In this document: in pieces, positions 4,323 through 51,894 of the stretch
Layout: each line of letters starts with the position of its first letter
How positions within the stretch are numbered: the stretch's first letter is position 1
Source: Podarcis melisellensis
Taxonomy: Eukaryota
NCBI GenBank assembly: GCA_964234715.1
Contig: OZ174290.1
Reading direction: 5' to 3' (one strand)
Length of the DNA stretch: 64,000 nt
Position numbers and translations under genes: made by a program
Notes under the pieces: model-generated
Database searches by the model: none
The model's input: only the letters and a program-made list of their open reading frames with translations
Told to the model about the DNA's origin: nothing

Positions 4323-4397
4323 GTTATCCAAATTTTGTCGCGACCTATGGCCGAGGATACCCTGGATTTGCCCCCAGTTACAGTTATCAGTTCCCAG
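4323..4397 (+). CDS. MSI2: MSI2 constitutive exon (human exon 10 equivalent), 75 nt, phase 1-1: (G)[24 protein letters not shown](G)
   Basis: CT-rich tract then ttcaAG acceptor (4321-4322); donor CAG|GTACGT at 4398. Peptide matches human MSI2 [26 protein letters not shown] with one substitution. Confidence 0.97.
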
Positions 4398-11009: not shown

Positions 11010-11050
11010 ACTATTTGCCGATTTCACAAGACATAATTTTTATCAACTAG
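11010..11050 (+). CDS. MSI2: MSI2 alternative terminal coding exon: (D)YLPISQDIIFIN* (short isoform)
   Basis: Acceptor ttcttatttcactttgcAG (11008-11009); phase-1 reading gives DYLPISQDIIFIN-TAG, nearly identical to the recalled C-terminus DYLPVSQDIIFIN of the short human MSI2 isoform. Confidence 0.9.
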
Positions 11051-12955
11051 TTCTTAAAGATGCATAACAAATTAATCGGGGTTTACTGCAGTGCTAATGA
11101 GAGAGAGTGAGAGAGAGTGAGAGAGAGAAAGCCTGGGTGGTCTGTACATTAATATCAGTATCCACTGGAAAAAAATATGCTGCTCTTACTGACTCCTTTG
11201 GCTGACTGGACTATATTTTTTAAAAAAGAAAATCTCCATATCTTTTTCCTGTTTTTTGATTTTCCCTTCTTTTTGTTCCCCCACCCCCTGCTTTGTATGA
11301 GTTTGTTTTTTTTAATACCCACATGGAATGTAACTCACATCAGGGTTGGCTGCGGGTGAAGGCATTACAATTTCTCACAAACTTTTAGGGACAATTCTCT
11401 TGTTTTCACTGAGATGTGCTGTTTGACCCACCTTAAAAAGTCCGGAAGGAGATTTTGGCTGGCATTTATTGCTATACATCAGCTCTGAGACGCAACAGCA
11501 GCTATCCCTTGTTGGCGTTCAGAATGGTGGTTGCTACAGCTATTGGACAAATGAGGAGGGTGAATCTGATTAAAATTAATCTGGTTGGTGGAGGTCACTT
11601 TTGGTTTGGAATGGATCTTTCAGTAGCCATTATGCTGTGGCCTTCTCCACACCACCACAAAAGCCATAAACACTGGTTCAAGTAACTGACCAAGAGCTCT
11701 GCTTAGAGAACTCAGTTGTGCTCCCTCTTAAATGTGAAGCTGCCTTGCCAATCAACTCATGGACCTTGGTGTTCATTGTACGACTGACACCGAGTTGCTG
11801 CCGAAAGCAGAATCCCTGATGCCAGGTCATGTTGTGGTATCATCATGACACGTTTCCTGGTTAGCAGCAGCCCAGCCCTTCCCAGGCTTAATTGAGTGAA
11901 CTGCTGGCAGCCAATTTGGCAGACTAATCAGAGTTGTTGGGATGAGGCCTGGTTGGTCCTTGAGGTGGGTGGTCCATCTGTGCAAGGGGCTTACCACCTT
12001 CAGACATTAGGTTGGGGCTGCCGTGATAGAATCCTTTGCGCAGGGACATTCCCTGCACATAGAAACCTGGAGGTCTCAGTTCCAACCTAGCCTTCCTCCT
12101 GACATGCTAGCTCTCTGTGTGCAGAGACCGAAGTAGCATTCTGTTTTGTGAGCCACTGCCTGCAGTTCAGACAGCTGGGCCTCACTGTCAGTGCTCTGTA
12201 GCTTTGAGACTTCCATGGAAATTGGCTTTCCAGCTGTATGACAAGTCTGGGCACCCTCCTGTATTGATAATGCAACAAAGAAAACAGGCCCTTCTACTTA
12301 TTTCCTAAGTTTGTGAGAAATTGGCTGCATGCTTACAGTAGGACTGAGATGCATTTTAAATATATGTTTAATTCACTTGTTTAAAATGTCAAAGTCACTG
12401 CAATCGGAGTTGTGCTGTTCATTTAATAATGGTGCTTGATGTAATAACTGTTTAGTTTTCCTCTTTTTTATCCTTTTTGCAAGCTATGGCTTTTGAAACC
12501 TGTATGGCTTTTTTAATTATTATTTTGCGGGGGAGGGTTTTTTGCTATTATTTGCTTTGCATTTGTGATCTTGTCCTAGAATGCATGATTTTGCAGACAT
12601 TTAACTGTTGTATGATTTTTTTTTTCTTAATTCCTTTGGTTTCTTTTGTAAGTAGTTCATCTGTGCTTTTCTTTGCTTTTCTTTTTTGGTAAAAAAAAAT
12701 CCTTGTAGAAAAGGTAGAAAAAGTGATAATAAATTGTTACAATAGACAAGCTGTGTTTTTGCTCTCTTAGCTTGCACTTTCAATTCGGTTGTACCAAATA
12801 ACCAGTACCAATAACAATGTAATGAAAAAATACATAAGTTAGTAAAAAGCATGGCATCTCTTTTCAACATGCGTCAAAGTTTTGCTGCAGATTAAATGTT
12901 GCATTTTAGTTCAGTATATTTAAATGAAAGTATAAAAGCAATGGTTACTGGTGGG
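11051..12955 (+). promoter_or_regulatory. MSI2: Putative alternative 3'UTR of the short MSI2 isoform with poly(A) signals
   Basis: Follows the TAG at 11048-11050; no recognisable transposon; very U-rich at 12350-12930; AATAAA 12728-12733 and TATAAA 12931-12936 followed by a GU/U-rich tract. End position is inferred. Confidence 0.55.
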
Positions 12956-16439: not shown

Positions 16440-17570
16440 TTTATTTAAATTTGTAAGCCTTCCCTTCATTGTACCAGGACAGGTTACAGCAGAACATCAA
16501 ACAGTATAAACTTAAAACAGCCACTCAAGCCATCCTTAGTACAGCATACAATACTAGTGTAGCAGGTGAGCACACAAATAGCAGCTGGCCACATTGCCTA
16601 ACCTCCTCCAAAAGCCTGGATAAAAAAAAGATTCCTCTTTAACAGGCACCGAAACTCAAGTAGGCTCAATACCAGAATCCTCTCTAAATGGTATTTCTTG
16701 TGCCAACATGCCATGCACTTCCCCTTATGGTGGAACCACGAGAAGAACCTCTCAATCTGATCTCGGTGCATGAGCAGGTTGACAGAAAGGTGATCCTTCA
16801 GGAATTTGGGTTTTAAGGTAAAAGGCTTTATTATATGGCAAGGTTAACCTGTTGAATTAGTTTAGAGAAGAAAAGACTGAGAGGGGATATGATAGCCGCC
16901 TTTAGATCTTTTAAGGGTTGTCATGTGAACGATGGAGCAAGCTACTCCAGAGGGTAGGACCTGATGCAATGGGTTCAAATTACAACAAAGGAGATTCTGG
17001 CTAAACACTAGGAAGAACTTTCTGATGTTAAGACCTGTTCAGCAGTAGAATGGACTACCTACGAAGGACTCAGCTTCCTTGGAGGTTTTTAAGCAGAGAA
17101 TGGATGGCTATCTGTCAGGAATTCTTTAGCTGTGATTGCAGGGGTTTGGACGACCCTTGGGGTTCCTTCCAAGTCTCTGAATTGGGATCAGAAGCATATA
17201 GACAAGTAGTGCAGGTTCTTCAGGACTTACATTCTATGGTCCTGCCTATTGGTAGTAGTCAGCAGTCTTACAGCTGCTTTCTGGACTAGTTAGCAGCTTC
17301 TGGACAATCTTGAAGGGTAGCCTTACATAGAGCACATTACAGTCCTCCAGTCAGGAGGCTAGTAGAGTGGGGATTACCATCCAGGAACAGCCAAAGCTAA
17401 TAGTAGGCACTCCTTGCACAAAGGTCACTCAGGCTTCCAGTTAAAAGAGTTGGCTCCAGGAGCACCTCTAGACTACAAATCTGTTCTTTCAAGGCAGGTA
17501 CAACTCTATCCAGAACATACAATCTATTTAATTCCTGGACCGGAGAACTACCAATCCACATCTGTTATGC
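16440..17570 (-). mobile_element. Decayed L2 LINE fragment interrupted by a CR1 insertion
   Basis: L2-type 3' end at 16440 and L2 ORF2-like sequence (cagctgctttctggac...agcacattacagt..tccag) resuming after 17182. Confidence 0.65.
16859..17182 (+). mobile_element. CR1 LINE 3' fragment nested in L2
   Basis: gagaagaaaagactgagaggggatatgata...aggaagaactttctga...ggaggtttttaagcagag...ccttccaa; tgaatt on both sides as a possible TSD. Confidence 0.85.
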
Positions 17571-20369: not shown

Positions 20370-22329
20370 GTGTAGAGGCTATTAGCAGGTGTGTGGCTCC
20401 TTTGAATCTGAAGCAGACTCAGAATTTTAAAGGGATGCATTTATATACATTTTTGGAATTTATTTCTAAATTTCTGTTTTTTAATCTGGCCCACTCCAAA
20501 CGGGGCCAGGAAGTCCACCCCTCATTTCTTCTCACAGTTCCCTTAGAGGAACCCAGAGGTGCAGCTGCTGGGAGACTTTCCATGAACTATGATTCACAGA
20601 AGCCAAGCAGCACAAATGGAAGCACAGGTGCATGGCGAGTGGAAAGAGGGTTGTCCCGCTGGAGGACTGGGGTCAAATGAATCGCATGCCCAGCCTGTTT
20701 TGCTTCCAAGGCATCTTGGTACCTCCGAGTGTTTGCTGTTGCCTGGTGAGCATTGCAAGTTGGGCAAAATCTATCAGCAAAGTGGCAGTGACCCTTTGCT
20801 AATTGGCAACCTCTTATGGGGAACCATGAAAAGCTGGTCAGGGAAATGGCCCAAAATGTGTGGTGGTGGTGGTTTTAGGCTGCAAATATCTGACATAGGC
20901 AACTGCGAGCCAGTGGGCTAGTAATGTTAATGGCAGCAGCAGATAACTTTTTTATCCAGCTGTTCACCACAAAACAATGTTAAATAATATTTAGGCTACC
21001 TGTACTATTTATGCTCGGGCTGTTGTGCATTGATTTCCCCACCCGTTAGGAATTTTCACGTTTTTGGCTACAGTTCTTCATAGTCTGAACCTCCACATGC
21101 TTCCCAATTGTTTACTCCTTCAAATCTGGAAAACCTGGGCAACTGCTTTTCAGTCCCCATGGGCCATCTACTAGTGAGAGGGTGAGAGGGTAAGAGAAAA
21201 GGATGTGGAGGCTGGGAAGAAAACCCCCCAACCCAACCAGACCCCAGGGGATTCTTGCTTGCACGCTCCCTTCTTTTGAGGCCTCTGTTCTTGTCAGCCC
21301 CTGTGCCTGGAATACCAGAGTAGGCTCTCTAATGATGACCTCATTATGCGTGCCACTACTGAGCCCAAAATGCACTAATTTCCTGACCCGGTGAAATATA
21401 TTTTAATAAGCTTGATCTAGAGCAGCGTTTAAAGACAAAGGGAAACACTTAACGTGGCTGTCAAAATAAAGCACTCTTGGGCAGATGTTAAAAATGTTAA
21501 TAGGATTAATCCATCAGAAGCACCCAGGAGAGCCTGCCCTGTTTGTATACCTCTATTTGCCATTTTAAAGCACAGGGTTAAACTATTTCTTTGGAGAGAG
21601 AAAGAGAGGGGGAAATGGATTAAATTTTGAGGTCGTGCAATTTTTCTTAAATTAGTTTATAGCTTGCTGTGCTGCCCAGTAATGCCTATATTTGATTCTA
21701 TGGATTTTTAGTGCTTACCGTGGGATCTTCAATCAAACCCAGTTACCCAGGCAAGTTCATTACACTTAAAAGTTTTTTAAACCACCTCTTCCTCCCCCAC
21801 CCCCGAACTTTTTAGTAGAATTCTGTCTCTCTTGATACAACGATGGACATCTCTGTTGTGCTTTTAATAATCTCTGTAAAACATTCCTGGCTTTGTGTAC
21901 TTTTGTTTCAATGGGAAATGGAACAAATACTCACCAGGGCACTAGGAAGATTTGCGCTGACAGCATCCTTTTTTGGGTTGTGACCAAAGTGAGATTTGCC
22001 ATGGGCTGCATCTGTGACATACAGCTGCAGAACGCAACAAGAAGTTCCATCGTGTCACTCATGGTATTTAACATTTCATGAAATGGCTGGATGAGATCAT
22101 CCAGACGTGCAATGTCTGGAGTGCGGCGTCATCTGTAGATCAGTCATACCCAATTCTAACTCTCCCTTTCATCTGACCCTGGGAAGACAGTGTGAATTCT
22201 AAATAGGGGCCTTAAGTCAGCCGTGAATTAGATGAGTGTGAGCAAAATTTGAAAAGACACATGTATTGTTAGCTGGGCCGATGCTGGAGATATGCACCTT
22301 TATTGTACAGGGTTGTACTTCCCCTAAAG

Positions 22330-26000: not shown

Positions 26001-28582
26001 GGGCAGGGCATTTTGGGGATAAAACTTAATTTTTGCAAATTTCTTCAGAGGCGTCTTTAAAATATGTTCTTGGGTGTGAGGAATTAAATCTGTTACTGTT
26101 TTTGTGATTGGGTAACATTTAGCTTGGTAGGTCTACATTTGTCAAAGAAGCACATAATCTGCTTTCAATAATAATAATAATATCTAACTGCAAGTACTTT
26201 GCAATCATTTTTAATGATTTCTATACAATTTTACACACATTTTACTTACCAAGTGGAATTTGAAAGTTGAAAAATTCAACACGCCCTAGTAGAGCAGCCT
26301 GTGCCCCTGGATCCATTGGGCTAGGGAAGGGAATGTAGCTCAAACCAAATTGTGTCCTTTCTTGCTGTAGGCCCCAGCCTTTCCTGATGACTCCAGTCAT
26401 AACATTCTTATTTTTATTGAAAGGAACACCTGAAATCACGCTGAGGGTGGCCTACAGGGTTTCTTTCCTCCCCCAAGTAAAGGCAAGAAGCCAGACTTGG
26501 GAAAACATTAGACTACCACCCTCAAGCCTGATCTCCGAACTATATCTCTGATTTATATTCTTCCAGCCTGTGCTGCAAGAGGAGCAACATGGTGCTATAA
26601 CTCCCATCAACCCTACCCAGCATGGCCCAATGGCCAGGGTTCTATTTATGGTTTCAAATTTATAGCCCTTCCTTCCTTCACAAGATGAACCCTTACCATT
26701 TGAAAGATAACTTTAATGAATTGCAAACTGTGGTATAAAAACTCCATAAAGCTATTAGCCAAAAACCTGGATTAACATTGACAATTATAATGAAAATCTT
26801 CTATGTGTTTCTGAATGCAGAAAACTCCTTAGGGTGATCCACAGCCGGGGTGCCTCCGCTAAGAGTGCCTTATCTTGTGTCCCTGTCCCTCATGCTATTC
26901 CTATTGATGATACCACAAGCACGACCCCCCCCATTGAAAATTTTGAAATGGATGGTACTTTGGTCCCAGGTCATTTAAAGCTTTGTACCCTAGTACACCT
27001 TGAATGGAGCCGGGCAGCTCATAGGATGAGAGGAGTTGTTGTCTGAAACATCTGGAGGAACCTTCATATTACATATTATGTGCCAAATTATGCCCTGCCA
27101 TTCTGTTAAAAGCACGATACTTTCCTGGGTCTTAGGCAGCATTTAATAAATGTGCTATCCAGCCAAGCACTCCATGATTTTGGAAGGCTAGCACCATATT
27201 TCATATTAAGCTTTGATGATGGTTTCAGAGTGCCACAAATACCAACAGCTACACTGCTTATTTGGAGAGCATCTAAAGCTTAATTATTTGGTGGGAGTGC
27301 AGATACAGCTGTTATGGGCAGTACCCATTCACTACACCTCAAGATTTTAGCTCCTTGGAGTTGCAAGTTGCAGGTGATGGTATCACACTAGGAAATAATA
27401 ATGGAAAGAAGCGTTCTGTAGTGAAGTTGGTGCTATCCGCTTTCATAAAAACAGTTTGCCTCGTAGTAAGAACTGCACAAGGAAGTGTGCAACACATTTG
27501 GAGCAGCTGTATTCTTAGGTGTGCAAGGGTGTACAAAGCAGTGTGTAAAGGCAGGGATAGGGCAATAAATAGACAAGTGAGGCCTGGGTTCAAACCACCA
27601 TGAACTTTACTAAGTGATCTCAGGCACAGTTTCCATATCTTAGACTAACCTACTCACAGGGTATAAATGAAAGGTGTATGTGGACCAGAGGAAGACCCGT
27701 GTCTGCTGCTCTCAGATCCTCAGAGGAAAACATTCAAAAAAAGTAAGAAGTCTATAAATGCAATCTGAAAGGTGTACTCCGAGGCTGGTATCGCAGAGGA
27801 GTCTTGGGATGTGTTGTGCCTCCTCTTGAGTGATGAAATGTCTCAGGCAGAGGTCTATGAAGAGCAGAGAATCTGAGTCACTGTTAAAAATAATCAAGGC
27901 TCCCACCCCTGACCCCCGACCCAATCTACCTTTGGCTACACTACATGACCCCAAATGGCATCATGGCAACCAGGAAGCAGAGCTGTTGTATAGGCAAGCT
28001 GAGGGGCTGGTGCTATGACTGGCCAAGGATTTGTTGGAAGGGACATGGGAAAACTTCCTTTAGCTTCCAGTTGTTCGGTCCAGAAAGTAATCTGTTAAAT
28101 TGTTACACATCTTTGCCTTTCAGTAGCAAACATCCAGACAAACTTCCTTCCTCTTCCATTCCTGCTGTTGCTGACACCCATCCTATCCCTCTATTGTTCA
28201 CCCTGATGTTGTACGCAAGTGTCATAAGAAAACATGATAGCTAGATCTGGGGTGTGGCAGCTTCTGGAAGCAGGTATACTTGATAGGTGACCCACATGCC
28301 CATCCCAGCTGACATGGCATCCAGGTGTGGACATACTGAAAATGATATAGTTTCTGCACTTGCTTGGGTCTAGTCTCTGCAAGCAGTTTCTCTTTTCTTT
28401 CCTACCCAGCCACTGCAACCTTGATAACCACTTCAGCACCACAACTGAAGAGCATGCCAATTAACCTCTACATTTAATGAGAATGGGACCTAGCTTTTCT
28501 TTAAGCAAATGTTTTGTGTATGGGGGACGGGCTCCGAGGACAGCTGCATTTATTTACCTGGAATGTTTTTTTCCTCCAACAG

Positions 28583-28606
28583 CCCTATTACCATATTTAA
28601 ATGCAA
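28583..28606 (+). CDS. MSI2: MSI2 24-nt in-frame microexon: YQFP-ALLPYLNA-SFPAAAY
   Basis: ttttttcctccaacAG acceptor (28581-28582), donor CAA|GTATGT at 28607; phase 1-1, no stop; peptide recalled from predicted vertebrate MSI2 isoforms. Confidence 0.8.
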
Positions 28607-29402
28607 GTATGTCTCTCTTAATTCATATTTTGCAGTAGTTTAGAGACACTTTAGCCTCTCACTTCTGTTCAGCTTTTCCCTGTTAGCAATACATGTAGCT
28701 ACGGTGATAGAACTAGAGCTAGCAGGCTTGTAGTTGGCTGAGTTCTTTGGATCTCTTTTTCTCTCTCTTATCTTTTCCTCTGCTTTCCGAATCCTCTTTT
28801 TATTTTCTTTGCCTCTGGCCTCCATATGATTGTCTTCATAATGAGGAACTATGAGCAGTGTAATCACTGGCCAAGAGTGCCTCCTGTCTTTTGTCATCAC
28901 AACCAAAATTGGCAATACAAATTAGAGTTCTCCAAAGCTCACCTCAAATTAACTCTGAAATTACTTGAGTTCTTTGGGAAAAAATGGAAGGAACTTGGGT
29001 GATTTTTCTGAGCCACTCCGAGGGCTCAGAGAAATTATTGGCCTTTCTGCCTTCTCCTTCCTTTTAAGGTCTCCCCACACGATCCCAGTTTCATGTTCTT
29101 AATTTTGAAGTAATGGTAGCGGCAGTGAAAGCAGACCAACATGTTAGCTAACAACCTACCAGCCCATGGGGAACTGTGACAGATGTAGTTCTCTGAAGAG
29201 CCACTGCCCCCATTTAAGATCAAATATGGGTGGGTATATGGATTCTGTAGGGGCAAGGCAACTACATCTCCTATGCTGTCTTCTTCCCCAGAAGGCTGCT
29301 CCGACTGGATGACAGAAGTAATGAGAGAGGGTGAAAACCCTCTCCTCTCTTCACTCCATGTACTTGCAACTTTTGCTGCTGCTGCTGCCGCTGCTACAAC
29401 TT

Positions 29403-30987: not shown

Positions 30988-31047
30988 GTTTTCCGGCAGC
31001 AGCCTACGGACCAGTAGCAGCGGCAGTGGCAGCAGCAAGAGGATCAG
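30988..31047 (+). CDS. MSI2: MSI2 constitutive exon (human exon 11 equivalent), 60 nt: (G)[19 protein letters not shown](G)
   Basis: Pyrimidine tract 30950-30980, ggccAG acceptor 30986-30987, donor CAG|GTAGGG at 31048; matches human [22 protein letters not shown] minus one Ala. Confidence 0.96.
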
Positions 31048-31104
31048 GTAGGGGGGGCCGTGGAAGAGGCGGCTACATGGCATACCTTCAGAATGCAGGG
31101 CCAG
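31048..31104 (+). CDS. MSI2: Alternative 5' splice-site extension of exon 11, 57 nt: GRGGRGRGGYMAYLQNAGP
   Basis: Open frame continues to a second donor CAG|GTAAAA at 31105, preserving phase 1; resembles a segment recalled from teleost msi2 isoforms. Confidence 0.75.
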
Positions 31105-31902: not shown

Positions 31903-34900
31903 TTATCCAGAACAGGGTGAGCAGTGCAGCTTGCCTTCTCTCATGCCATTTTTAGGTGGCAAGTCTGGTCAGCTGGACCTGGATGCTAGAAAAATAGTTC
32001 TCCCCAGTTACTTCGTAGGTCAGACATCTCACTAAAATATGGTTGGGGTGCTTAAGCATAGTTCTGGTGTGGTGTTTGAATTGACAAAACCATAGTTTGC
32101 AATTGGCCAACAAACCAGAATCTGATACAGTGACGGAAGTTGATTTACAAACTGGATTTTGTGCTAACTCTGGTTTGGTGTGATATTGATAGCCATTGTT
32201 TGACCTCCAGAAGCTGAACCAAAAGGGAGATGAGAGTGATTTGATGGACTTAGGAAGCTGAGTGGCAGAATACAACAGCAGACAAGCTGTTCTAAACTGT
32301 GGTCTGCTAGTATATTTGGAAGCTCATACCAAGGTTTTGGTTCTAAACTAGGGTTAGCACAAACAGCGACATGGCATGATGTCTAAATTGCACCATAGTT
32401 TGAAGTCAGTTGCAGTTTTAGGAGTGCAACCTAAATCAGGGGTGTTCCACCTTGGCATAAATTGGAATGGCTCTCTGAAGAGTATAACCTTTTGCAGACA
32501 TCTTTAAAAATACTTTTTACTCTTTGAGCTTGGATATTGTTCCATCTTTTGTTACCTGCTGCAAACTCTGGCTCCAGTTTCATGAGAAATGTGTGCCCAC
32601 CTATAAAAAGCTCCACTTCCTTCCACTCTGTTCTCCAGTGCCCCTCCTGCTAGGGGAAGTAGTTAAGCCGCTATTATATCCTAGCATTCCAGTTTAGGGG
32701 AAAGTGAATTATCCCTTTGGCATAATTGAGTGAAATCATGAGTGGGCTGCTAAGACTTACCAGTGCCTCTCTTTTGCTGTATTTGCTTGTTGGCTGAGAC
32801 CTTGGTTGTGCCTGAAGCCATTCTGAACCCTAAATACAAAGCAAGGACAAAGGGTAGATTGCTGCTTTCAGTGGGTTTTATTGCTCCCCAATCTATCTTG
32901 CTTGCTCATCTCTGTGTACTGTCTTGTGCGTTTATCCGGCCGTTTGTTCTTGCTAATATTAACTGGGTTATTGCACCGGGGGTGGCGGTGGGGGCAATTG
33001 GAGACAACATGATTGGGCCCAAATTCCCCAGCCAGATTGTACACGTTGAGACATGTAGCAAACAATTTGGAGGTAACTGTTTTATTCAGCTCTCTCATGA
33101 TGAAGCTTGTTCTTTGACATGAAAATTTCTACACTCATTAGCTATAGGCCTCTTCAAACCGACACAAAACAAAAGGTCCCAGACGTGGGGGAAGTGCTGT
33201 CAAGCAGCAACACACACACCGCAATAGACTTTGGCGGGGGTGGGGGGGAGACTGAATTATTTAGGCTCCAAAGTGGGATGTTTGGAGAACTCCGTTCCAT
33301 GCAAACTGGCACTGCTTGCGGGGCTACAAAGGATTCATCCGTAGCAGTTTATCGTTGTATGTAGGGAAAGTCCAAGGGTTGGTTTGCTCAAAGATAGCAA
33401 AGGGATTTTTTTTTCCTTTCCTTTTTAAAATCCTTTTCTGAAAAGGATTCCATTTATTATTTGAGGAAGAATGGACAGATTCCCTCGTCCCTTACCTGCA
33501 CTTTGGGGCCATTTGGTTCCAGTTTAATTTTAAATAGAGATGATCATTTTTTCCCACAGAAAGGACAAGGGTTCTGCCAGATTAAGTCTGATCTTCACTG
33601 TTGTCCTGTTTTAATCAGAGTGTCCCATCACAGCTGAACCTGAGTGTCAGCCAATTTCTCTGCTTGATATCATTTGGTTGGTTTTTTTGTTTTTGTTTTT
33701 TGTTTTAATTATTGTTTTGGATTTTTTTTTCTTTTTTAAAGAACAGATTAACTTTGTGATACCAAAAAAAGAAAAAAGAAAAGAAAATTCTAACCCTGAA
33801 ATTAACACCAACATATATGGCAAGTTTAAAGAGCAGTATGGTGCCCTGTATATATTTCTTGTGTGTTTTTGAAAAAAATCTCTGCACTTGCAGATCTACC
33901 CTAGTGCTCCCTCAAGGAAACTGTCTGCTGATGTGCAGAAGTGGTTTCCATTGACAAAGAAGCCCCTTCGGCTCAGGGACAGCATTCCATTTGCAGCCAT
34001 TACCATCAAAGGGAATAGCATTGATAGTGAAGTGTATTTAAGAGCAATGGAGTCAGCTTCATGTTAATGGCACTCAGGCCTGATTCATTACAGAGGGGGA
34101 ATGACAAATGGAAATAATTGGCTTCAATATTTTGATGATTAGAGCGATATCACTTGGGGCACACTTGCAAGATGACTTAAGTGACTACTAAAGCGAAGAC
34201 ACACCTGTGTCTTAAGATGTACGAATGTTAAATGTCTAAACCACAAGACATCAGTTCAGTGTATATTTATTGATCTCTCACTGCTGAACAGATTTGGGGG
34301 GGGGGGAGGTCTGCACCCCTGCGGAAGTTGGTAGTTGGGCCCTGTGATTGCAGCACTGCCGTACACACAATTATTATTATTTATTAAAATAGTATACTAC
34401 CCTAGACTCTTAGGTCTCAGGGTGGTTCATAACATACGAATTTGTGTGTTCATGGATCTTTAAACCACACTTCATAAGGCTGGCTGTTGGATGTAGAGAA
34501 TTCTGTCCTTACTCCCCACTCTGGCCTCTTGTGCATCCCGTAAGGGTACTCTACTAATTACAATCCACAGGCAGATGACCCCTCCCTGGAGCAAGGGCCT
34601 ATGCTTTTAATTTTGGTGGGAAAACATTTATTTTATTTTTATTTTTTCTTTACTAAATTGCTATACTACCTTTCATCCGAGGATCACAGGGTGATATTAG
34701 CCTGGGAGTTGGGGCTGTATGTTTCTTCGTTCATATTTATAGAAACATTTATGTACCTCCTTTCAGCCCTGAAAGGTCCCCCAAGGCAGGTTACAACAGT
34801 GAAAACACTGGAGTAATTACAACTGGAGAGCATTGAGAGAAGCCAAGAGAAAGCAAATGAAACCAGCCTCCCAGCAGGCCACAACACGAACTAAAACTTT

Positions 34901-43309: not shown

Positions 43310-46300
43310 CTCTTAGTGAAACTAACATAGACACTTTGTCTTCAACACAGCAAGCAAAGCAGGCAAAGAAAGATGAAGTATTTGGGTTTCAGATGAGGGA
43401 TCATATAGAGAGTAATGGCAAACAGATACCTGGCAGCAGTAATCAACCATGTGAAGGTCTAGAGCACATCAACTTAGCTTTCCTCTGCTGCCTTCTAACC
43501 CAGTGAAGACACTGACTGGGGAGATATTCCTTGGAAGCACCTTGGGCCTCACCTGGCACCTTCTTCCAGAAATCCACTTCACACTTTTTACCATGCTGTA
43601 TTCCACTGCATGCCACCACCAGCTCATTCCTCGCTTTATTAACTTGTGTTAAAGATCATGTAACCTCTTTGTTCTGCCCACTGTTTTCAGTGACTCAGTC
43701 ATGATCAGATAAGACATTCAAAAGATAAGTATTCTGAATATTCCTTTCTCCTCTTTATTCATTGGACGAGCTCCTTGGAGTCCAGACCGCTCTCAAATGC
43801 AGGTGTGAGATAAGGAGCACATGCTATATATTGTGGCTTCGTGAGTAGCTATTTTTAGTAATAAAAATTCACCATGATAAGAATATGACCAGCAAAACAC
43901 CAGCTTCCATTGCTGGAGGTGAAGAAGCTACACAGCAAAATGCTTTATGGTATAGTGGCATCAATCGTCATGCTGGCTAATGGCAGAAAAACAAAAAAGT
44001 GAAAATGAATAGCTCAGAAGTGGAACAGGTAATCAGTGGTTGAAGTTGCTGTCAAACATTGACTTCTTCCTTCTATTCCAAGAAACAAAATGGCTGACCA
44101 GTTGATTGGCATGGTCAACTATTTTGACAGGTTGCCTTGGAATCCCCAGCCTCTATGATTGTTGTCTTCTCTCTCCCCACCCCCCACTCAATAATAATAA
44201 TAATATCTGGACGAGATGTCAAAATATGGTGCAGGTTTTTCCGAGGGGATGGTTATCTTCTGCCCTCCAAAACTATGTAACAAAAAGAGAGAAAAATGTA
44301 GCACAGCATTTGAAAGGTCGACATTTGTTTGTTGTTAAGGATCTAATTAGAAGCATGAGAGGGAGCAGACTGGCTGCTTGCTTGGCTAATTAGTGACATG
44401 CACGAAGACCACTTTGAACTTCAAGGACACAGAGCTATTAGCACTTACATCAAAAATGGATTAAACTTCTGTGCTTTTGTAATGATTAAAGATGAGCCCC
44501 TCAAGTGGAAACTCTTTTGTCAAATGCTGCAAGAAGAACTGGCGCCCTGATTGCCGTTTCTCTTGGAGAAGCTTTGCAAGGCCTCGCGTGTGATGGCACT
44601 GGCCCCATCTGAAAATGACACTGTGTTTAATTCGCAATATGGGAGATTTTGATTAGGCTATAAATATTGATTGCTCATGAAACATCACAGCTAAGATGAG
44701 AAATGTATTTATTTGCCTCCATGAGCGAGTGCAGGATTTTATTTTGTGAGGGGTTTTTTTTATATACTTTGCTGTGTGTCAAGTATTTTGTTAATCTGTT
44801 CCCAATCACTTGTCGACAATCCTTTATCAGTGTGCAAGTTTAAACTCAGCTAAAACAGCTATTAAGGATGCAGTTGTTTCTAATATACTTATGGCTTTGG
44901 ACAGGTGGCTAACTTAGACGTCAAAGTGCCCCAGCCTGTCGCCATTTTAGTGGCTTTAAAGAAGTTGTCTAAATGCCTCATCTGTCTGACACGGCAAAAG
45001 AGCAATTCCCCCACACCCTCTCTACACTACAGTTGCTATGTCCCTAGCAGAACTTTGGGAAAGAGGAAATCCTTCCTATCTTACGACAAACCATCTTGAG
45101 GATAATACTGATGCAAGTTGAGAGGTGCACATCTTTCCTGCTCTCCTGAGTTTCATTCTGGCCTCTCCGTAGGCCACAACAGACAAGGCTTGTCAACCTG
45201 GAACAGGAGTATTTTTGGCCATTTCTACAATTCAGCACCATGTGATCTGTGCAGAACTCTTTGATGCACCATCTTCATATAGAAACCAGTCTCAAGAGAC
45301 AGCTCTTTTCTTAATCATATTCTCAACCTATCAGCAATATTTGCAAACTGCGCTTCACTGTATGTATTCTGGATTCAGTCTTTGCCAATGGTCCTCCATT
45401 CTGCTGTCCCATGTATCCTCTTGTTGATGCTGCTCTTAAGCTACAAATGCAACTGGTAACCCCACCACCCTTTCTGACCACAATATGCAGCAATAGATTT
45501 ATGGCATTTCTCCTGCATCCACTGACCCTTTTGAATTGTATGGATTTCAGTGGGATTTGATCTTGCTTAGCTGTCGCTGGCTTGTGTCCATATTCCACAA
45601 AGCAGGATGCTAAAGCCTGGAGATTGCAGCTCTTTTTATACATGCCATGGGGATTTAGCTTCTACAAATGTATCCGAATATCTTTTGAGCTATATCATGA
45701 ACCCAGCTGCACAATGGCTCTTTGAGCTGCATTTAATCTCCCTTGTGATTATGTTACCCAGTTATGTTACATGAAGCAATCAATATGTTCCAAAGCTTGC
45801 AGAGAGGAATGTTCTAACCTTTTGAACAGACTCTAAAATCCAGGTGGTCTTCATTTTGTACAGGGACACCAAGACTATTTCCTATTTAGAGCAACATCAT
45901 GGAAGTGACACCAGTAGCATAGTTAGATAATTTTAGGCTTACTAACCTTATACACGGACACACCTCTTAGATCTTAGGTTTAGTCATGTTGCATTTTGTA
46001 GCCCTCTTGCTCGTTTTGCTGATTGGGGCTCTGGTCATCTGCTCCAAAGTCCAATCCTGAGACCACCATCATGTAGCAGATGAGAGATTTAAGACTAGAA
46101 TATTTACAGGCCCTTCCAGCATGATGGATGTTTGCTTTTAGGCAGTGGGTGGGCAACCTGCAACCAAACCAGCCTAATGCATGTTGCCCTCCATCTCATC
46201 TCATGGAGCCCTTGGTCTAATGTCATGCTGGTGGGGAAAGTTGAAAGTTGAAAGAGGAGGTTTGGAGGAGGAAGAACCAGGGGAGAAAGCAGAGACAGAG

Positions 46301-51717: not shown

Positions 51718-51894
51718 GGATCCCCGATTACGGTTTCTATTCTCCGCCCGGTGACCAACGGGCTCAATTATCCTACGCGGACTATGGTTCCATGGGGCCT
51801 CGGGTGGCTCAGATGCTTCGTAGCGAGCACCCTGCTTCAGCGAGTAACTCCCCCCTTCACCACCTTCCCAGCCCGGATCAATTTAAAAGCCCAG
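51718..51894 (+). CDS. MSI2: MSI2 177-nt cassette exon: (G)IPDYGFYSPPGDQRAQLSYADYGSMGPRVAQMLRSEHPASASNSPLHHLPSPDQFKSP(G)
   Basis: tctccAG acceptor 51716-51717, donor CAG|GTTTGT at 51895, 59 codons with no stop in phase 1; GC/CpG-rich island in AT-rich intron; similar to a segment recalled from fish msi2. Confidence 0.85.

Follow-up and report, generated by a model that had tools for sequence, protein, structure and literature searches.

Musashi proteins read UAG, and groups of at least three such motifs, spaced 10-15 nt apart, reach an enrichment of 8-fold downstream of photoreceptor exons (PMC4991804). Musashi that is bound or tethered downstream of an exon activates its inclusion (PMC4991804, PMC9509328), and for exons that Musashi activates, eCLIP places the protein in the nearest part of the downstream intron (PMC9509328). 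The model for such control is exon 2A of Ttc8 (or Bbs8), a short photoreceptor cassette with clusters of at least three UAG within the ~100-300 nt of intron that follow its donor, for which Musashi binding and UAG mutations were tested by experiment (Murphy 2016, PMC4991804).

Closest to the element described here is a 24-nt exon of mouse Msi2 (chr11:88368212-88368235, mm10), which is rod-specific and Musashi-dependent (PMC4991804, PMC6952364, PMC9509328). It was tabulated, at chr11:88368211-88368235, as a 24-nt cassette flanked by exons of 75 nt and 63 nt (Murphy 2016, PMC4991804), the 75-nt one lying at chr11:88386044-88386119 (PMC4991804, PMC9509328). Its PSI is 0.80-0.85 in wild-type retina vs 0.38-0.52 in Aipl1-/- retina, which is without photoreceptors (Murphy 2016, PMC4991804). 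In the ASCOT compilation, its PSI is 92.8 in sorted rods and 95.1 in olfactory sensory neurons, 12.3 in hair cells, 13.8 in brain and ~0-2 in other tissues, inclusion being ~0-14% in bulk tissues and in the majority of the remaining sorted cells, and the supplementary note to that study counts Msi2 among the rod exons known from earlier reports that are conserved between mouse and human (Ling 2020, PMC6952364). The human MSI2 exon, also of 24 nt, is found at chr17:57650650-57650673 (hg38) (PMC6952364). In HepG2 its PSI is 0, rising to 33.9 upon MSI1 overexpression and to 51.8 when PTBP1 is knocked down in addition (Ling 2020, PMC6952364), and it stays at 0 with PCBP2 overexpression or with PTBP1 knockdown alone, and at ~0 (never above 1.05) in the ~40 ENCODE knockdowns tabulated (PMC6952364).

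Genetic evidence in mouse comes from the photoreceptor Msi1/Msi2 double knockout, in which the PSI of the exon goes from 0.83-0.87 to 0.29-0.45 with an FDR of 0 (0.85 and 0.38 overall, dPSI 0.47), skipping junction reads go from 34, 27, 37 and 41 to 115, 120, 73 and 73, and Msi2 RNA changes by a logFC of -0.53 (Matalkah 2022, PMC9509328). This fall could be an artefact of composition, photoreceptor Msi2 transcripts being lost from the floxed allele and the lower-inclusion transcripts of the inner retina left behind. Such a reading draws on the drop in Msi2 RNA and on the resemblance between the PSI of the knockout and that of the photoreceptor-less Aipl1-/- retina, but the RNA is only ~31% lower when skipping junction reads are ~3-fold higher, transcript loss alone would give a PSI floor of ~0.78 (by our own arithmetic from the published counts), and the gain seen in human cells, obtained independently, agrees with Musashi dependence. 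Since skipping reads go up while Msi2 RNA is only modestly down, the fall is a genuine splicing switch, not mere transcript loss, and the artefact, which we hold to be highly improbable, is largely refuted.

The locus described here is a 64-kb stretch of DNA from a Podarcis species (the window, that is, the whole stretch that was analysed), which is contained in an MSI2 orthologue on the + strand. Three exons are central to the argument.

Positions 4323-4397, + strand: MSI2 exon A, 75 nt, constitutive, flanking the microexon on its upstream side.
Positions 28583-28606, + strand: 24-nt cassette microexon, phase 1-1, with AG/GT flanks.
Positions 30988-31047, + strand: MSI2 exon B, 60 nt, encoding FPAAAYGPVAAAVAAARGS, the downstream partner of the microexon.

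The microexon starts at 28583, where a first-pass annotation made from the sequence had placed a 24-nt exon encoding ALLPYLNA, and that proposal holds on three counts: the AG/GT flanks, the phase of 1 and the occurrence of the same insertion in annotated isoforms. Its acceptor consists of a T/C-rich (pyrimidine) tract ending in cag, and its donor reads gtatgt. The product of exon A (25 protein letters) ends in YQFP followed by G, in phase 1, and the reading of exon B starts FPAAAYGPVAAA (FPAAAY), so that phase 1 between the two exons is kept across the microexon. Upon inclusion, the Gly at the junction is replaced by a 9-residue stretch, consisting of the eight residues named above plus Ser. 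The insert is most likely an invariant hydrophobic peptide of 8-9 residues in the disordered C-terminal tail of MSI2. A PY-type nuclear import signal was considered for it and rejected, there being no basic residue 2-5 residues upstream of Pro-Tyr.

Use of the microexon was assessed in annotated isoforms, which were gathered by searching with a 177-nt exon found further downstream (51720-51893 in the window) and then inspected at the junction between exons A and B. An identical 9-residue insertion is present in six MSI2 isoforms of the spotted gar, one tegu entry, one isoform each of a rattlesnake, a fence lizard and Darwin's frog, and one Xenopus tropicalis entry. The microexon is therefore an annotated and deeply conserved alternative exon, since the same insertion is annotated in gar, frogs and squamates. 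At the DNA level, the peptide is also found in the loci of bowfin, where it is identical, and paddlefish, where it has one substitution. Most of the MSI2 isoforms retrieved show the plain junction between exons A and B, as do all of ~300 sampled isoforms, mostly from teleosts, and the best 120 hits of a query with eel MSI2 are skip isoforms throughout.

How does the Podarcis exon compare with that of mammals? The exon sizes are 75/24/60 nt in the window vs 75/24/63 nt in mouse, and the microexon has the same length as the mouse/human MSI2 exon and the same position in the C-terminal tail, with a 75-nt exon before it and a 60/63-nt exon after it. The differences are that the distance from microexon to next exon is 1.4 kb in mouse and 2.4 kb in the window, and that the Podarcis copy sits in a non-mammalian genome, unlike the mouse/human exon. 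By position, length and flanking exon sizes, the microexon of the window is expected to be the orthologue of the mouse/human exon.

The second notable feature of the locus is what follows the donor of the microexon.

Positions 28636-28654, + strand: UAG sub-cluster 1, three UAG at +30, +35 and +46 of the intron, with spacings of 5 and 11 nt, including a GUAGU.
Positions 28684-28733, + strand: UAG sub-cluster 2, six UAG from +78 to +125, with spacings of 12, 12, 6, 6 and 11 nt.
Positions 28744-28815, + strand: CU-rich tract with many UCUU/CUCU, just past the UAG cluster.

There are thus nine TAG, at 28636, 28641, 28652, 28684, 28696, 28708, 28714, 28720 and 28731 (intron offsets +30, +35, +46, +78, +90, +102, +108, +114 and +125), two of which are full GTAGT (at 28635 and 28730). 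This is exactly the array of nine UAG in 98 nt, beginning 30 nt past the donor, that the first-pass annotation had described, and each position was confirmed. Its expectation of ~1.5 TAG was slightly high, the figure being 1.18 per 98 nt from a TAG frequency of 0.0120 in the window. Nine is the maximum among all 98-nt windows of the 64 kb, and in 200 dinucleotide-preserving shuffles of the whole stretch a maximum of 9 was seen in 1/200 and of 8 in 18/200, which gives a window-wide P of ~0.005. A dinucleotide shuffle of the cluster only (P = 0.02) was discarded as a null model, since the TA and AG dinucleotides that it keeps constant are produced by the TAGs, and an origin by tandem repetition was rejected, the cluster containing no tandem repeat. 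Over 130 nt of intron, counted from control donors, there are 2 TAG (exon A), 1 (exon B), 0 (the alternative donor) and 2 (the 177-nt exon), and a stretch of equal length upstream of the microexon has 1.

Both sub-clusters agree with the published criterion, which asks for at least three UAG that lie 10-15 nt apart at most, close to the exon in the downstream intron. The likeness to Ttc8 exon 2A extends to the short cassette and to the placement of the clusters. There are also differences: the MSI2 cluster is denser (9 in 98 nt), it is known here from sequence whereas that of Ttc8 is known from experiment, and its host gene is itself a Musashi gene. As for the CU-rich tract, it is a possible PTBP1 site, judging from its motif content, and it shows no visible conservation in the alignments with bowfin and paddlefish.

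Conservation of the exon together with its cluster was examined in those loci with short enough genes (the MSI2 genes of gar, 247 kb, and python, 117 kb, were left out), and the microexons of fish were located with the insertion peptide taken from the gar database protein.

Positions 32891-32914 of the bowfin locus (L001): microexon, peptide identical.
Positions 16825-16848 of the paddlefish locus (L003): microexon, one substitution in the peptide.

The intron between microexon and exon B is of comparable size in the three loci, with 2381 nt in the window, 2656 nt in bowfin and 2680 nt in paddlefish. Downstream of the microexon, TAG are found at +51, +75, +96, +101, +117 and +134 in bowfin, and at +35, +40, +68, +83, +95, +101 and +112 in paddlefish. 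The 150 nt upstream hold 1 and 0 TAG, respectively. In bowfin, 6 TAG in 98 nt ties the maximum of the locus (a density reached by 0.13% of windows), and in paddlefish 7 TAG does the same (0.06% of windows), so that in all three loci that have the microexon (3/3) the adjoining cluster ties for the densest 98-nt TAG window. The first-pass annotation had made its proposal depend on conservation of the cluster, and the cluster is indeed kept in bowfin and paddlefish.

Part of this conservation is base for base. The UAG-bearing block TAGTTTAG is common to the window, where it stands at +30 in sub-cluster 1, and paddlefish, where it stands at +35, and a second UAG-bearing block, ATGTAGCT, is found at +87 in the window and +98 in paddlefish. 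A third block in sub-cluster 2, GGCTTGTAGTT, stands at +119 in the window and is identical at +106 in paddlefish, while the bowfin copy differs at one base. Where an intron can still be aligned between reptiles and ray-finned fishes, it is under constraint, and much of the retained sequence is UAG with its immediate flanks. The downstream UAG cluster has been kept since before the split of reptiles and ray-finned fishes.

Two other loci broaden the picture. In the teleost Arapaima gigas, neither a 24-nt exon nor a TAG cluster is present in the intron between exon A and exon B (L004, 585-15254), although a gap of 100 N at 12174-12273, ~3 kb upstream of exon B, falls near the expected place of the exon. 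The comparison suggests that exon and cluster were lost jointly in Arapaima, but as a negative it is weak, the gap leaving a loophole. In the shark Mustelus asterias, no recognisable microexon is found within 18 kb upstream of exon B, which is a weak negative. The Mustelus locus does have a TAG-rich spot 1.3 kb upstream of exon B (L002, 16700-16900), of repeat-looking sequence, which no microexon-like segment adjoins.

With these comparisons in hand, it is scarcely credible that the 24-nt segment is unused as an exon in the Podarcis species and that its TAG density came about by chance. Non-use would have to be squared with intact splice signals and with an identical insertion annotated in related squamates, and chance with the outcome of the window-wide shuffles and an arrangement of exon and cluster that is conserved in fish.

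Another question is which protein reads the cluster. UAG is a short core common to several RNA-binding proteins, and the array might be bound by hnRNP A1/A2B1, DAZAP1 or a similar UAG reader, or be conserved for an unrelated reason, Musashi acting elsewhere. Several observations make this very unlikely: (i) UAGG, the hnRNP A1-type core, occurs at none of the nine sites, (ii) the human exon stays at ~0% upon knockdown of HNRNPA1, HNRNPA2B1, DAZAP1 and ~40 other factors, (iii) the geometry of the cluster matches the Musashi rule and (iv) the cluster is absent where the exon is absent (Arapaima).

It may also be asked whether the microexon belongs mainly with the neuronal/retinal microexons that depend on SRRM3/SRRM4 (Irimia 2014; Ciampi 2022), in which case the UAG cluster would be accessory or irrelevant and the Musashi dependence indirect. 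The two have in common their size class (24 nt fits the SRRM3/4 class of 27-30 nt or less), a neural/sensory inclusion, in neurons and ciliated sensory cells for the mouse exon, and a deep conservation in vertebrates, and retina-enriched microexons mostly need SRRM3/4, MSI1 overexpression switching on only a handful (Ciampi 2022). The MSI2 microexon departs from this class, however, in lacking a UGC enhancer close to its acceptor, since a single UGC, at 28545 (-38), occurs within 60 nt upstream of it and the nearest 30 nt contain none. It departs from it too in the response of its human orthologue to MSI1 alone, which brings about 34% inclusion in HepG2, a liver line. Together with a UAG cluster that is conserved and ties for densest in each of the three exon-bearing loci, this leaves a primary dependence on SRRM3/4 unlikely in our view.

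The reading that we prefer, and consider probable, is that the microexon is the orthologue of the MSI2 cassette exon of rods and olfactory neurons, that the UAG cluster is its Musashi-binding splicing enhancer, and that the exon is skipped at ordinary Musashi levels. In rods and olfactory sensory neurons, nuclear MSI1/MSI2 would be abundant and would bind the clustered UAGs at +30 to +125, just downstream of a weakly defined microexon. Such binding, which we infer to be direct, would promote inclusion of the microexon. At an ordinary Musashi level the microexon would be skipped, and PTBP1 would dampen the Musashi effect, with the CU-rich tract at 28744-28815 as the candidate site. By analogy with the mammalian exon, the same regulation presumably operates in the Podarcis species as in mouse and human, and the insert may alter the activity of MSI2, for which the first-pass annotation had imagined a self-sensing switch.

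What the first-pass annotation had put forward, namely inclusion where Musashi is high (it named the retina), is what the mouse counterpart displays (PSI of ~93% in rods and 0.80-0.85 in wild-type retina). Its suggestion to look at Msi1/Msi2 knockout data leads to the same exon, whose PSI drops in the double knockout, just as that of the human exon goes from 0 to 34% with MSI1. The interpretation is therefore supported, and the regulation was already in published mouse/human tables. Since both the exon and its Musashi dependence had been published, the present analysis mostly confirms that reasoning from sequence reached a true and known event.

One element of the annotation needs rewording, which is the notion of Musashi acting on its own gene. 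The part that stands is that an exon of MSI2 is Musashi-dependent, but the main driver is MSI1, with which MSI2 is redundant. Knockdown of Msi2 alone in mouse retina has a minimal effect on rod splicing (PMC6952364). The ENCODE knockdown of MSI2 was done in HepG2 (PMC6952364), a line that presumably expresses MSI2. A minimal effect of Msi2 knockdown, and 0% inclusion in HepG2 without added MSI1, argue that MSI2 autoregulation is weaker than MSI1 cross-regulation. The loop is thus better described as MSI1-driven cross-regulation with a redundant MSI2 input at high dose.

A bolder proposal, which taken as a whole we regard as speculative and rather doubtful, is that microexon and cluster sense the dose of Musashi in a loop that dates back at least to the last ancestor shared by ray-finned fishes and tetrapods and was apparently lost in at least some teleosts, and that the insert changes MSI2 function. 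The invariant 8-residue insert would then be added only where nuclear Musashi is very abundant, as in ciliated sensory neurons (rods and olfactory), and might shift the balance between a nuclear/splicing and a cytoplasmic translational role, or the choice of partners.

The new part of this work, a modest one, is that the putative UAG enhancer has been conserved from a time before ray-finned fishes and tetrapods diverged. Two points seem not to be made explicitly in the literature searched: (i) an invariant peptide together with a cluster that paddlefish, bowfin and reptiles have all kept, in part base for base, both of which seem to be jointly missing in a teleost, and (ii) a feedback or cross-regulatory loop, in which a Musashi protein controls the isoform of a Musashi gene. 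The string 'autoregulat' is absent from the main text of Matalkah 2022 (PMC9509328).

The window holds further alternative segments of MSI2, and one further TAG-rich spot, which are reported here in their own right.

Positions 11010-11050, + strand: alternative terminal exon in the intron between exon A and exon B, encoding DYLPISQDIIFIN and then a stop.
Positions 21712-21750, + strand: 39-nt cassette in phase 1 that encodes VLTVGSSIKPSYP and has GC in place of GT as its donor.
Positions 31048-31104, + strand: extension of exon B by 57 nt through an alternative donor, adding an RGG/RG-rich stretch.
Positions 45830-45981, + strand: second densest TAG cluster, 8 in 98 nt, starting near 45884.
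Positions 51718-51894, + strand: 177-nt cassette exon, phase 1-1, 59 residues.

The product of the terminal exon matches the C-terminus (DYLPVSQDIIFIN) of the truncated human MSI2 'variant 2' of MacNicol 2017, and the same ending occurs in isoforms of Elgaria and Chiloscyllium too. The peptide of the 39-nt cassette is identical to that annotated in MSI2 isoforms of Lacerta, Rhineura and Euleptes, and the rattlesnake and fence lizard isoforms combine this cassette with the 24-nt microexon. Sharks, eel, bowfin and others have annotated MSI2 isoforms with equivalents of the RGG/RG-rich stretch, which the 177-nt exon usually follows. The TAG cluster near 45884 begins ~35 nt after a 14-nt segment flanked by AG and GT (45830-45843), in the intron between exon B and the 177-nt exon; from its layout, it could be another Musashi-responsive element, in this case frame-shifting, or a product of chance. 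As for the 177-nt exon, the search with it yielded 39 hits at E <= 0.001, and sharks, ray-finned fishes, lungfish, amphibians and reptiles all have MSI2 isoforms that carry it, the copy of the window being closest to those of squamates (56/58 residues). Such a spread from sharks to reptiles makes it an ancient exon rather than one of a single lineage.
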